Source of the DNA: Vitrella brassicaformis CCMP3155 | Lineage: Eukaryota > Protista > Chromerida | Direction of reading: 5' to 3' | Assembly: GCA_001179505.1 (NCBI GenBank) | Contig: CDMY01000702.1 | Coordinates: 1 to 28,935 of the forward strand | Length of the DNA: 28,935 bases | Shown here: piece after piece, positions 17,997 to 26,064 of the stretch | Layout of the letters: each line of letters begins with the position of its first letter | Position numbering within the stretch: position 1 is the first letter of the stretch | Made by a program: the position numbers and the translations under genes | Notes under the pieces: generated by a model | What the model saw: only the letters and a program-made list of their open reading frames with translations | Databases searched by the model: none | Told to the model about the DNA's origin: nothing

Positions 17997-19219
17997 ATGG
18001 CATCGGCCTCCAGCCAGTCGGGCAGGCGCCCTGTGAAGGTGGCTGTCGTCCAGGCAGGCACGTACATGTTCAACACGCCCAAGACGATAGACACGCTGGA
18101 GCGGCTGACGGCAGATGCCAGGCAGCAGGGCGCATGTATTGTGGTCTTCCCGGAGGCATTCGTGGGCGGGTACCCCAAGTTCGCTGTAAGCACCAGAAAA
18201 AGACAGAGAATATGGCGAGGCCACTTACCCACCAGGTGATATCCCTCTGCTGTGATCCCTCTGGTAGGACTTCGGTGTTCGTGTGGGCTCCCGATCTGAG
18301 CAGGGACGAGACCTCTATCGATCATACCACGACGCTGCAATCACCGTGCCGTCAGCAGAGACCGACCGCATCGGATCCGTCGCACGGCAACACGGCATTT
18401 ATCTTGTTGTTGGTGTCATCGAGAAGGATCAGGGCACCCTCTACTGCGCCGTCCTCACCTTCGCTGACACAGGAGAGCTCCTGGGCACGCACAGGAAGGT
18501 CCTGCCCACTGCGGCGGAGAGGTACATCTGGGGGCGAGGCGATGGCAGCACCATGCCTGTGTTCGACACCAATTGCGGCAAGGTGGGGGCTTGCATCTGT
18601 TGGGAAAACTACATGCCGCTGATGCGGATGGCCATGTACGCCAAAGGCATAGAGATCTACTGTGCGCCTACGGGTGGGGTGGGATGGGTGGAGGAAGTCC
18701 ACACACATAGAGAACAGCGGACATGCCCTCTCTGCAATGTGTGTGCCGTCTGCAGTAGACGACCGCGACACATGGCTGAGCACTTGCCGTCACATCGCCG
18801 TCGAGGGCCGCTGCTTTGTCCTCACAGCCGTGCAGCACTTCACACGAGACCACTGGCCAGACTGCGACCTCTCCGTGCCGGCGGCAACCGGCTCGTTAAG
18901 CGACGATGGATCATCCGAACCCCGCCCTCTGATCCGCGGCGGCAGCGCCATCGTGTCGCCCTTTGGTGAGGTGCTTGCCGGCCCCCTATTCAACAAGGAG
19001 GGTGTGCTGGTGGCGGAGATCGATCTCAATGACGTCACCAGGGGCAAACTCGACCTCGATGGTGAGTGAGCTAGAGGGGGGATATAATGGCGCATCATGT
19101 GTTTTGATGTGATGTGTGGGTTTTGGTCAGTGAGCGGTCACTACGCGCGGTCCGACATCTTTCAGCTGACTGTCGACGAGCGGCCCAAGGCGTCTGTGAC
19201 CTTTTTTGCGGCCGACTGA
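17997..19219 (+). CDS. Nitrilase (branch-1, plant NIT/aliphatic-nitrilase-like)
   Basis: Exons 17997-18185, 18268-18673, 18756-19061, 19131-19219. Catalytic triad intact: FPEAF (E), HRK (K), ICWENYMP (C). Also [21 protein letters not shown] and [12 protein letters not shown]. Confidence 0.95.
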
Positions 19220-20309: not shown

Positions 20310-21357
20310 TCAATGCATGAAAACCCTCTGTTGACCGCCGTCAATTCCGTTTCCTCGCGCCTACAGCAAGAACACAGAGGGCGGAGAATCGTGCACCAAC
20401 CAGTGATATCCGCCTGCGACAGGTCTTTGATGTGTGCAGTGCCTCGCTCGCACCTTCTGCTTCTGTTTTTGGTTCATGCCGCTTGGATGTGCGTCCACTG
20501 CCTCCGTTTATTAGCCGAGTCAAGAATCGCCCCATGCTGACACACGCAACACGACCACGCTGAACGTATGAGCGAGCTTTTCTACTGCGTGAGCAGCACG
20601 TACCTGTAAGCGCCATCACCGATAGGTGCCTGAGATGCTGTTGGAGCGGAGTAAAGCGACCCTCCTGGAGCAAAGGCTGCACACACAGACACCCACACGC
20701 CAGACAATCAGACAACCGGCAACCTCCTTCCTCCCGCATCTCAACCGGCAACTCCCCTCCCCCCTTCCCTCCCGCATCTCACACGTGTGCGCATACCTCC
20801 TCTCCCCAGCTTCTTGTCGTCGTTGTACGATACCTGGACGAAGCTCAAGAGGCGCGGCGCTTTTNNNNNNNNNNNNNNNNNNNNNNNNNNNNNNNNNNNN
20901 NNNNNNNNNNNNNNNNNNNNNNNNNNNNNNNNNNNNNNNNNNNNNNNNNNNNNNNNNNNNNNNNNNNNNNNNNNNNNNNNNNNNNNNNNNNNNNNNNNNN
21001 NNNNNNNNNNNNNNNNNNNNNNNNNNNNNNNNNNNNNNNNNNNNNNNNNNNNNNNNNNNNNNNNNNNNNNNNNNNNNNNNNNNNNNNNNNNNNNNNNNNN
21101 NNNNNNNNNNNNNNNNNNNNNNNNNNNNNNNNNNNNNNNNNNNNNNNNNNNNNNNNNNNNNNNNCCCCCCCCACCCTCAGGCAGCTGTGGCAGGCGACGT
21201 AGAGGTTCTCGTCCCACTCGAGAAACTTGATCTTGTCCTCCGCATCAGACAGCAAGTCCCTCAGTTGCATATCCCTGAGCTTGGGGTCAACCACCTTCTT
21301 GGACTCAGGAATCAGTTTTCGCAACACTGAGAGCACGCGCTCCTCGTTGTCGGCCAT
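20310..21357 (-). CDS. Hypothetical protein interrupted by an assembly gap
   Basis: MADNEERVLSVLRKLIPESKKVVDPKLRDMQLRDLLSDAEDKIKFLEWDENLYVACHSCLR, then the gap, then ...SYNDDKKLGRG|AFAPGGSLYSAPTASQAPIGDGAY|SMGRFL...RISL|ARGNGIDGGQQRVFMH*, with compatible intron phases. The 3' exons are less certain. Confidence 0.55.
20865..21163. other. Assembly gap (~300 N)
   Basis: Run of N. Confidence 1.
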
Positions 21358-21841
21358 CCTTCTGCTGACAAATGTTCCCCGTAGACAAAGTCGACTTTCT
21401 GTTTCATGAAACCCGCATTCCTAACTCTTTAAGGGTTCGGGTTTGATCGGGTGCGGCCGCGGGTCGGCGCAGACGGCATCAACGCAAGATGGCAGATAAT
21501 ACAGGCGATGTGCTTGAGAGTCGGGTGAGAGATTCAGATTCTCCCGACAGGGGTCAACGAAGCCCCGCTGGATGAGCATCACCTGGCCGTGCCATGTTGG
21601 ATCTTTCCGAGCTGACATCCCTTGCTTCATTGCGTCCTTCCGAGCGACCGAGCCGCCGCGCTTTGTGCGTATGTGTGTGTGTGTGTATTCCAGATCGCCT
21701 GGCCGGAGAAATGGCCGAGCTCCGTGGGCAGGTGGAGGGCATTTCGTCGGAGCTGCTTGGGCAAAGGGCAAGGGACGAACGAGGTCACTTTGGTGGAAGG
21801 TGCTTTGCTCTTGTTCTTTGCAGGGGCTGCTGCTTGCGAGT

Positions 21842-22456
21842 ATGAAGACTCGCCAGGTGAGTAAGAAACGATGGGAGGGAGGGAGGGAGGAAGCACGGTG
21901 CTCATCCTCTGTGTCGTGCAGGTGGCTTGTCGTGTGTGGGGCTGTGAGGAGCACCACAGCATTGCTGCAAGCTGTGTGGCGACGAGAACTCCGACCACTT
22001 CGCCAGCGAGTGCCCCTATGGCGTCAGCCTCTACCATCAGACGAGCAGGGCGGCCGCACGCGCCGTGGCATCCTCAGGCGAAATGCTGCGGGGCTCCACC
22101 GGCATCGTCGGCGGCGGCATCTACCTGTGAGCAGGCCACACAAACATGGCCAACCACAGCCGCACACAGGCATGTCTGTGTCTTGTGTGTTTGGCTGGCG
22201 CGTCAGGGCGGCATCCCCACAGCAGACCGACCGTAAGTCTCATCAGAGGGGCTGCATGGTGGACGCGCGTGTGTACCGGGGCAAGGTCTTGCCCCTGACC
22301 CCAGGCCAGCACCACCTACACGCGGATGCAGTGCAAGCAGGCGGGCTACGACTCGGTGCAGCTGGCCACGGGGCGAGAGATCCGGAGGAGGCCCAGACAG
22401 TGGGCAGGCCACAGGAGGCCCACCAAACGGGCCCTATCTATAAGTGGCTGCGTTGA
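21842..22456 (+). pseudogene. Zinc-finger + PARP-like (H-Y-E clade, Gig2-like) ADP-ribosyltransferase gene with three frameshifts
   Basis: MKTRQ|VACRVWGCEEH (frame break at ~21956) QHCCKLCGDENSDHFASECPYGVSLYHQTSRAAARAVASSGEMLRGSTGIVGGGIYL|AASPQQTDRKSHQRGCMVDARVYRGKV (break at ~22307) TYTRMQCKQAGYDSVQLATGRE (break at ~22379) DPEEAQTV...*. Introns at 21857-21921 and 22127-22206. Possible upstream exons from 21594. Confidence 0.8.
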
Positions 22457-23262
22457 TTCTCTAGGGTCCTTTATATGTGTGTGGGCGCCATACACACACG
22501 CCACGCCACGATGCTGCAGCCGATAGCTTTTTGCTTCCTCGGGGCTTTGTTTGAGACCTGGCCCTTCCCTCTCTCTCGCTCTTTTCTGTCGAGTTATTCT
22601 CGCCCAACCATTCACACATTTGTATTTGTGACGAACTCACCTTCCCCCTCTGTGTGTGTGTGTGTGTGTGTCTCTGTGCATGCGGTCAGCGTGTGTGTAT
22701 CTGTGGGTGGGTGTCGTGTGCGAGAGTGAGTGTTTGCCGCATGGCATCGACAGTCCATCGACCACACACCACACACAGACAGACAGAAACAGATAAATAG
22801 ACAGACAGACAGACGTGTGCCTCGCCGCTCATTTGGATGAGTTGGCGTGGTTGACACACTGTGCACTCATTAATCGTGGAGTGGTCATTACTTCATACGC
22901 ACACACGACAGACCGGGACGTGCAGCTCAATTGCCCTGTCGCCCTGTCGATTGTACGCGTGAGTCATGATGCCATTCAGTCACTCGAAGGCCTCACATGA
23001 ATGGCATTCGAGACTCGAGAGGAAGGCAACGAATACTGTTGAATGCCTCCCTGTGGCGTCCAATCTGAAATGTGCGGACCGCCAATCGAGACCATCGAAG
23101 CTTTCACCGTCTGCCACGTCATCCAGTCAGTCGACCACTGACACCCACTGACATCCAGCAGCACCAACACGTGAAGTCATTCAGTCAACACCTCTAAACG
23201 CACCTCACCCAGCCGCCGTTTCTGGCTACATGGAAGCAGGCAGCAGATGAGCATCCACCACG

Positions 23263-23337
23263 GCATTCACGTCAGTGACACCCGTCTGGCTGGGTGCCAC
23301 TGGGTGCACACATCAGGAGAGTGACTCACACTGACTA
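23263..23337. repeat. Imperfect ~75-bp direct repeat; partner at 26661-26733
   Basis: GCATTCACGTCAGTGA...CCCG.CTGG.TGG.TGCCAC...GAGAGTGACTCACAC is present at both sites. Confidence 0.8.
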
Positions 23338-26064
23338 CATGCCGAGTGTCACCCACTCCCCTCGTTCGTCGACGTACCCCAGATGTTGCCACTCGAATGC
23401 CGCCACGTCCTTGGTGAAGCCGTTGCCGATGCTGGCCGGCAGCCCGTCGTATCTCGCGGCCTCGTCCAGGATGGCCCGCTGCACCACCTCACGCAACTCC
23501 ATCAGCCGATGCTGCCCGCCATGCTGCCCCCTGACGACGAAGCACCGCAGCTGCGGCACCCGCACCCTCTCGCCGTCCACATTGGTCGTCCCGCCCACCA
23601 CCTCCTCATTGCCCACCACTTGCAGCGATGCGGCGGCCCCCACGAAACGCGCCATCGCGGTGTTGACGCGGCGGCCGATCTCAGTCACGTTCTGGACGGG
23701 GCGGGGGCTCTGCTCCAGCACCGATGGGTTGACGAAGGACGACGCCACGCGCCAGGCGATGGGCGACATGTCCCGATTGGCGAAGGGCATGTAGTCGTTG
23801 TGCCAGGAGGGCTCCGGGTCGACGTGTGGGGGGAGGGGGGGAGGAGGCACGGAGGGGCGGGATGGGTCGAATGAGGGGAAGGCGGCCTTGAGCTGCTGGG
23901 CGGTGGCATTGTGGAGTGCCTCTGTTAGCGCGTCGGCCATCTCGCGCTGAGGGCGCAGGGCGGCGTTGACGGTCGCCATGACGTCATGCGGCAGCTGGTT
24001 GAGCACTGTCGCATACTCGGGCAGCATCAGCTGTCGACGACGACGGTGTCGCTCTGTGGCTGTGGGGATGAAGGCGATGTCAGCGCCCGCCTGGAGGAGC
24101 ACACTGATGGTGTGCTTGACATGAGGGATCCGGATGGTGGCCAGGGCTTCCCTCTCGGCCTGCCCCGTGTTGTTGTCTTGCAGCCGCTGGGTGGCCTCAT
24201 CGAGCGATTGGGCAGCGGCGGTGAGGGGTGTGAGAGCGGGGGCATTCGGCAGCCCTCTGTCGATGTCAGCAGCGGTGAGACGGCCGCAGAGAGAGGCAGC
24301 GACACGGTGGGAACCCCAGTGCGCCACCCGATGTAATGGTGTCAGCCCACCGTTGTCCACGGGCCTGATGTCCACCCCGTTCGTCACCAGCAGGTCAATG
24401 TAGTTCTCGATGGACTGCTGGGACCAGATTGGAGGCGTCATGGCGGCCCAATGCATCGGATTGAGGCCGTCCGCATCCCGCTCGGTTGCGAGTGTGCTGT
24501 CCCGCTCGATGAGCTGCCGGTAGAAGGACAGCAGCGTGGCCTCGTGAGCCCCAGTCGGCTGGTCCGTATCCAATGTGGTAGGCACCGTCAGCACCCGACG
24601 CCCCCGCAGCTGGATGCCTGGAACAGACAGACAGACAGACCGACATCACGCTGTGTGTTCCGTGTCGTAAGTGCTGTGAATGAGTGCGCACCTGGCTGGC
24701 CCATCAGGAGGTCGAATGCGGCCCGGTTGCACGAGGCAATGGCCACCACGATGGGCGTACAGGCACGCTCACCCGCATTGATGTCGGCGCCTCCCTGGAC
24801 GAGGCTTCCCATGATAGCGAGCTGGATGCCGCGAGTCTCCCACATGGGCATGGCGAGGGGACAGTGGTCATCGCCCTTAACTGCCCAGATGGACGGCAGA
24901 CTGTTGTCAGTGAGGTTGTCGATGCACAGCGACAGCAGCGGATAGGCAAAATGGTCTCCCGACGTGCTGCCCGCCACGTACAGCCCAGGCTCCACATTGA
25001 GGTCGGCTCCATGCCGCTGGACCGCCAGTGATGCGGCGCTCTCTGATGACCTTGAACAGTGCGTAGCTGGCGACGCTGGTGCCATTCGGGAAGCGGACGC
25101 GGACCTCCTCATTCAAGCTCTTCCAGCCGTGGGGCAACGGCGCACCTGTGGCACAGCGTGCATAGGGGAGGGTGTGTTGGGGGGTAATTTGTTGACCTAC
25201 GTCCGTCCTGTCGGCCCTCACCGCTGCCCTGCTGCCTATCGACACCAACACCGACGCCCCCTCCGACGCGGGGCGGTTGCGGTGGGACACCAACACCACC
25301 AGCAGGATGGGGAGCGAGAGGATTCTGCACACACCATATACAATACAGCTCACAACACAACCATGCCATCTCTTAGTGTGGTAAGGACAGAGGAGGCATG
25401 CAATCACCTGTGGCTGCTGGCCATTTGGCAGGTTGGCGGCAAGTTGGTGCGTCTGGCCGTCTCGCTTGGCCCTCTTGTGCTCCTCACGCTCCAGAGGAAA
25501 GCCGGCACGCTTCACAATACCTACACAGACGACCCAAAGACCATGCTGGCTGTGGTGCATTTATTGGCTACCTGTATAGCTTCCTGACGGTTCCTGCTCT
25601 CCTGCTGCCGATGCTGCCGATGCTTGTGGCCCACCCGCCACCCTTGCCGTGAGCTTAATGTCCTGCCGTTTGCCACGGCGGAACAGCCGATGACACACAC
25701 ACACGCACGGGAGATTGCGTGAAAGTGTCTGTCTGTCGCGGTGCTCTTGTTTGTTGGCGAACCGGCGGTGGCATGTGAGAGGGCTCTGTCATGAAGGCGT
25801 TGTTCCTCTGCCTCACGATGACATTGCTCACCTGCTGGTGGTCCTCCACATCCATTGGCTGCCGCTCGTCACCGCCGCCACACTGCTCGGCATACTCTGC
25901 AAAGACGGTGAAGCGGACACACACACACACACACGACGTTTGGCCATGATGCTGTGTGTGTGATGTGCTGCATATTTGCGTGAGTTGAGTGTACCTTCAT
26001 CGCCGTCGCCACCGTCCGCCATAGCAGGGGAGGCCATGTCGGTGTCGGGACGACCAGACGACAT
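23335..26064 (-). pseudogene. Ankyrin-repeat protein of a Vitrella-type expanded family; frameshift at ~25030
   Basis: The last exon, 23335-24617, has ANK repeats (GLNPMHWAA, LLVTNGVDI, GLTPLHRVA, LTPLTAAA, LLQAGADI). Exon 24692-25145 has GADLN, GADIN and TPIVVAI, but its 5' half (ALFKVIRERRIT) is out of frame with QRHGADLNVEPGL. Upstream exons at 25201-25324, 25408-25520, 25572-25653 and two more up to the ATG at ~26064. Confidence 0.75.

Follow-up and report, generated by a model that had tools for sequence, protein, structure and literature searches.

Organization of the locus

The stretch of DNA analysed here (the window, 28,935 nucleotides of contig C702) belongs to the draft genome of Vitrella brassicaformis CCMP3155, to which exact protein matches also assign it, and four gaps of 300 N lie inside it. 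Its forward strand carries a spliced transcription unit, in which a putative Cys/His zinc finger is followed by the motifs of a PARP-type ADP-ribosyltransferase (ART) domain, distributed over different reading frames (Table 1).

Table 1. Features of the transcribed ART-related locus, in positions of the window
Feature	Position	Strand	Evidence
Transcript first exon	21474..21856	+	RNA-type contigs X7 record 23 and X6 record 18
Intron 1, 65 nt, GT..AG, with a (GGGA)n repeat	21857..21921	+	Joint 21853>21919 (cut +3), X6 and X7 only; splice sites read
Putative finger, first half (VACRVWGCEEHH)	21922..21957	+	Aligns with CRVKGCKKAH of intact paralogs; frame used by the mRNA ORF
Frame break 1, within the finger	21955..21962	+	Also in the C431 copy; no indel in 4/4 runs
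Putative finger, second half (C-x2-C-x6-H-x4-C), and N-terminal half of the ART domain	21960..22126	+	E 1.2e-22 to L002; alignment A4
Intron 2, 80 nt, GT..AG	22127..22206	+	Joint 22126>22207 in X6 and X7; position after GGGIYL as in L002-L006
ART middle (AASPQQ...GCMVDARVYRGKVLPLT), third frame	22207..22300	+	Alignment A3
TGA closing the spliced-mRNA ORF	22296..22298	+	Frames followed across the joints
Frame break 2	22300..22316	+	Spacing compared with paralogs; no indel in four runs
ART segment YTRMQCKQAGYDSVQLATGRE, Glu codon 22377	22317..22379	+	Alignment A3 and pairwise DNA alignments
Degenerate tail	22380..22456	+	Post-Glu strand (YIVF in paralogs) not encoded in any frame

The three-frame translation of 21800-22560 contains all the peptides that the first-pass annotation had read there: VACRVWGCEEHH in frame 1, HCCKLCGDENSDHFASECPYGVSLYHQTS...GGGIYL in frame 0, AASPQQTDRKSHQRGCMVDARVYRGKVLPLT in frame 2 (from 22208) and YTRMQCKQAGYDSVQLATGRE again in frame 0. 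Their similarity to the paralogs described below is beyond chance (E 1.2e-22 to 1.4e-14). The codons that had been proposed as the catalytic triad were also placed correctly, with His at 22035, Tyr at 22122 and Glu at 22377. Judged from the alignments, the last of these is likely, though not certain, to be the true counterpart of the catalytic Glu, the DNA alignments of the tail being ambiguous; in the spliced mRNA its codon stands in another reading frame than the His and Tyr codons. The gene had been said to escape the list of open reading frames (ORFs), which is indeed the case for the frame-0 core, because this segment has no start codon. The frame switches that had been assumed to stitch the peptides together require revision: the junction between IYL and AASP is not a switch of frame but the GT-AG intron 2, while the other two are true frame breaks.

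Apart from its last ~19 bases, the first exon shows no homology to the family; it contains ATGs at 21489, 21508, 21572, 21594, 21671, 21711 and 21842. Upstream of it, a divergent neighbour gene (21166-21357, minus strand) starts at 21357 (MADNEERVLSVLRKL...) and enters a 300-N gap at 20865-21164; its start is covered by RNA-type contigs, and it has no Pfam match. We infer that the ART-related unit is transcribed from a promoter region held in common with this neighbour. Farther upstream lies a carbon-nitrogen hydrolase gene with introns (18283-19069, plus strand; PF00795, E 3e-31), and downstream an ankyrin-repeat gene (23335-24594, minus strand).

A PARP-type ADP-ribosyltransferase family with a putative zinc finger

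The pieces of the window copy were searched singly, exon by exon, against the 72.7-Mb, 1064-contig assembly. The 55-residue core (21960-22124) matched 28 places in the organism's own genome, and the five best paralogs (L002-L006) are 55-69% identical to it over the 55 residues (E 1.2e-22 to 1.4e-14). All four pieces are collinear with L002-L006 (alignments A3 and A4), and the exons of these paralogs end at the same residue as the window exon before intron 2. L002, on contig C718, runs without interruption but for one intron, as CRVKGC...HYCRLCGD...DHWATEC, LYHQTS...GGGIYL, the intron, and AASEQ...GCMIEARVYLG...GYDSVHLTGMPTGDEYIVFNWAQV. The full domain is present in the intact paralogs, in some of them within one exon. 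Thus intact paralogs, which the first-pass annotation had proposed to look for, do exist in the genome, and its view of the locus as a member of a zinc-finger/ART family in chromerids is borne out; the family is multi-copy.

The intact members combine one or two copies of an eight-ligand finger pattern (C-x4-C-x3-H-x1-2-H-x-C-x2-C-x5-6-H-x4-C) with a minimal PARP-type ART domain of ~110 residues, and UniRef names the Vitrella members 'PARP catalytic domain-containing protein'. The second half of the finger module, C-x2-C ... H-x4-C, is common to the CCHC zinc knuckle (PF00098; Pfam E 1.2), but the family module has a spacing of x6 instead of x4 and an extra preceding C-x4-C-x3-H-x-H half. All eight candidate ligands, whose role in binding zinc is putative, occur in the window copy, where break 1 divides them. 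The window copy shares with the Vitrella paralogs (for example P0001, P0002 and P0004, the last being CEM31347.1) the putative finger pattern and the LYHQT, GGGIY, GYDSV and Glu motifs. It differs from them by its two frame breaks, its foreign first exon, the lack of the final strand and the lack of a neighbouring PARG gene; it also has one finger where L002 has two. PARG (PF05028) has 25 matches in the genome, none of them on C702, and on the contigs of the closest paralogs (C718 and C238) PARG matches lie 1.6-3 kb away, with short finger matches in between.

By sequence and by predicted fold, the family belongs to the PARP-type ARTs with an H-Y-E triad. Alignment A2 comprises eleven members in which a single frame stays open across the domain; H53, Y82 (in GIYFA) and the motif GYD do not vary in it, and E141 is found in 10/11, with Ile in the remaining copy. 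An Ile in the place of the catalytic Glu is carried by the family member L029 (G000:C718:103575-103895), which reads DRQIYAVYN around it. An H-Y-I triad of this type resembles that of the mono-ADP-ribosylating PARPs. The A2 profile matched the catalytic fragment of PARP3 (3c49) with E 4.6e-8; in this match LYHQT falls on LWHGT, and GkGIYFA on GKGIYFA. A weaker match was PARP4, where the family Glu coincides with that of DDEFVVY; PARP13 and tankyrase 2 came next.

The fold tests used an intact paralog, P0002 (158 aa), in place of the window copy. Its AlphaFold (AF2) model has a pLDDT of 81 and a pTM of 0.73; the ART part is mostly at pLDDT 80-94, and the finger at 48-67. The best 50 PDB matches of this model in Foldseek were all tankyrase, PARP4 or PARP2, with probability 1.0, and a second structural aligner (VIA) gave PARP-family ART domains throughout (Z 9.2-9.9, rmsd ~3 A over ~115 residues). 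The comparison with PARPs that had been suggested for the predicted structure thus returned, among these matches, ART domains of PARPs, tankyrase and PARP13 only. Profile, fold and paralog alignments together uphold the original description of the module as a putative Cys/His zinc finger followed by an H-Y-E ART domain of the PARP type.

Neither the window pieces nor the Vitrella paralogs reached the gathering cut-off of PF00644, which more distant relatives, some of them multi-domain, do pass (P0003, P0006 and P0021), and the window pieces and paralog exons gave no family match in Pfam at all, with traces of eIF3g (E 0.18), zf-CCHC (E 1.2) and ART-PolyVal (E 0.15). In comparison with the PARP catalytic domain (PF00644; human PARP3, PARP4, tankyrase 1/2, PARP13 and PARP1/2), the Vitrella family shares the ART fold and the aligned H-Y-E triad, but its domain has ~110 residues as against ~200, and there is no helical regulatory domain. 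PARP1 has a second NAD+-stacking Tyr; alignment A2, by contrast, shows no aromatic residue at this position.

In an exhaustive profile search of public data, 2,418 cluster representatives passed E <= 1e-3, and 1,081 of them also passed E <= 1e-10. The same finger occurs in some relatives outside Vitrella (P0010, P0012 and P0013). In P0144, of 927 aa, the mini-ART domain is fused to a MOV10/UPF1-like helicase, which hints at RNA-linked roles for the domain. A search of viral contigs with the family alignment found no relative. The fish Gig2 family is regarded as PARP-like; a literature search on Vitrella PARP and on Gig2 ART found nothing bearing on the present family.

Frame breaks, splicing and probable decay of the window copy

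The span 21300-22900 was compared with contigs from four public runs, each belonging to a different study. Across 21919-22126 and 22207-22639, these contigs showed 0 gaps and 0 other letters relative to the window. The contigs of X1 and X4 are contiguous through both introns and hence DNA-like, while those of X6 and X7 carry both GT-AG joints (65 nt and 80 nt), cover at least 21474-22769 and are RNA-like; the kind of each run was deduced from this splicing, as the run records do not state it. Since four runs reproduce the assembly without indels, the frame breaks are genuine. The locus is transcribed and spliced, and its RNA is not corrected. Such contigs drop rare variants, and a minor isoform or allele could escape the comparison.

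At 22722-22790, within a repeat of the CA/CAGA type, 67 nt are missing from the contigs of all four runs, also from those that are DNA-like; the probable cause is a difference in repeat length or an artefact of assembly, not splicing. Separately, marine sediment metagenomes (runs X11 and X13-X16) contain 11-37% of the sampled words of the stretch, which suggests that Vitrella or a close relative occurs there.

Break 1 falls between 21957 and 21960, inside the finger. At break 2, the spacing from VYRG to GYDSV is 61 nt in the window copy; three intact paralogs have 63 nt there, and L002 has 66 nt. Moreover, the hydrophobic strand that follows the Glu in every intact member is not encoded after the Glu codon in any frame of the window copy. 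With two breaks and the post-Glu strand gone, the window copy offers no continuous frame for the whole ART domain. An ORF opened at ATG 21572 or 21842 enters exon 2 in the same frame as VACRVWGCEEHHSIAAS and ends at TGA 22296. It covers no part of the ART domain and, of the finger, just the first half; the segment 21960..22126, with the rest of the finger and the N-terminal half of the domain, lies in a different frame. Because of the two breaks and the lost last strand, the mRNA presents the domain in the wrong frame, its reading terminates at 22296, and an ART protein cannot result.

The closest DNA relative lies on contig C431 (L022, G000:C431:2755-3321), with 81% identity over ~530 nt. The homology starts at ~21838, a few bases before the mini-ORF MKTRQ, and spans both introns; the two copies were therefore related by duplication at the DNA level and not by retrocopying. 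The flanks of the C431 copy are unrelated to the window. The C431 copy has break 1 in common with the window copy. In addition, it has lost 16 nt after LYHQ, it contains a 19-nt insertion and an in-frame stop, and one Cys of its finger has become Ser. Between the two copies omega is 0.57, and the divergence of the exons (~7%) is close to that of the introns (9-12%). Comparisons between intact paralogs gave dN/dS values of 0.24-0.35, with one close pair at 0.49, and comparisons of the window copy with intact paralogs gave 0.34-0.52; from ~97 codons, these values only lean towards relaxed constraint. In a further copy, L037 (G000:C801:13038-13187), the family reading is lost after GYDSIYVTAM, so that this copy is probably broken too. 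At least three broken copies (the window, C431 and C801:13038) thus stand beside ~16 apparently intact ART domains.

Alternative readings of the locus

Our preferred reading is that the window copy is a transcribed and spliced pseudogene of the zinc-finger and PARP-type ART family, which we consider very probable. Three observations speak against it. Transcription and correct splicing persist, which a dead gene need not show, and the copy retains, besides one putative finger with every candidate ligand and both splice sites of the family intron, the codons for His, Tyr and Glu. The dN/dS of the window copy against intact paralogs exceeds that among the intact paralogs to a moderate degree only. 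The notion that the frame breaks are mere errors in an otherwise intact gene would fit the draft state of the assembly, with its four 300-N gaps in the window, but we regard it as extremely improbable: the four runs, which come from four studies, agree with the window letter by letter over the two intervals given above, break 1 recurs in the independent C431 copy, and the terminal strand is missing in every frame. Assembly error was accordingly rejected as the cause of the breaks on the agreement of the contigs. The first-pass annotation had supposed a hidden gene that standard annotation would call in the wrong frame. The locus is no working gene of this kind: the breaks stand in two DNA-type runs and in the RNA contigs, break 1 is shared with the decayed C431 copy, the post-Glu strand is missing, and the mRNA stops at 22296. 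A working product could still be imagined through programmed ribosomal frameshifting or through an alternative acceptor, as use of the AG at 21958-59 would bring HCCKLCG into frame with MKTRQ, and the MKTRQ mini-exon and its GTGAGT donor are conserved in C431. However, the acceptor used in the RNA contigs is 21921, no joint to 21960 was seen in them, and the paralogs show CRVWGCEEHH to be homologous coding sequence, so that an acceptor at 21958-59 erasing break 1 was rejected. Even with this acceptor, break 2 and the lost strand would remain, and two recoding events in one small gene find no support; we consider a working gene of this kind highly improbable.

A new role for the transcript, either as a non-coding RNA or as the message for a ~190-residue protein that starts at ATG 21572 and uses other frames of the old exons, is unlikely, although by a less wide measure. 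The spliced transcript is seen in two studies, nothing interrupts the ORF between 21572 and 22296, and the stop at 22296 lies within the last exon seen. Against this, the frame-1 reading matches no protein (a word search of the 21871-22233 ORF, against proteins of 67-212 aa), Pfam finds nothing in exon 1, the sequence is of low complexity, and the ORF is preceded by several upstream ATGs with short ORFs. The same search bears on homologs conserved in the alternative frames, which the first-pass annotation had named as evidence that would overturn its reading: for the 21871-22233 ORF none was found among proteins of 67-212 aa, and the homologs follow the frames that it had chosen. Finally, a chance resemblance of the motifs in GC-rich DNA, to which the lack of Pfam matches of the window pieces might point, is refuted by the E values of 1e-22 to paralogs, the common intron position and the collinear pieces, and its probability is vanishingly small. 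The locus does not hide a working gene; it is the fossil of one, left by decay, while intact copies of the family sit elsewhere in the genome.

A possible account and its significance

We propose that the window locus is a dispersed, 5'-truncated duplicate from the Vitrella gene family. By analogy with PARPs, the intact domain would hold NAD+ through His in LYHQT and Tyr in GxGIYFA, and the Glu of G-x-E-Y-V-V-Y would transfer the ADP-ribose. The finger of the intact members may aim the enzyme, and the neighbouring PARG gene may erase the ADP-ribose mark. In the window copy, the two breaks and the loss of the last strand have left an mRNA in which the domain is out of frame. A more speculative extension, to which we assign a rather low but not negligible probability, is that the zinc-finger mini-PARP/PARG family serves chromerids and other protists as a conflict or defence system with fast turnover, and that the window locus is a fossil of its birth-and-death evolution, possibly retained as a transcribed decoy or regulator of the intact copies. 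Metagenomic relatives, too, have the finger fused to this domain.

Taken alone, the window copy is one more decayed member of an expanded gene family, and provides one data point on turnover within this family. It also carries a caution for annotation, in that a spliced and expressed locus with recognisable catalytic motifs may still be dead. The family is more interesting than the locus. The kind is already known; the Vitrella branch is its minimal version of ~110 residues, and the Pfam models catch none of the Vitrella members. With its private zinc finger, and often with PARG as a neighbour, this minimal PARP belongs to a family of ~2,400 cluster representatives.
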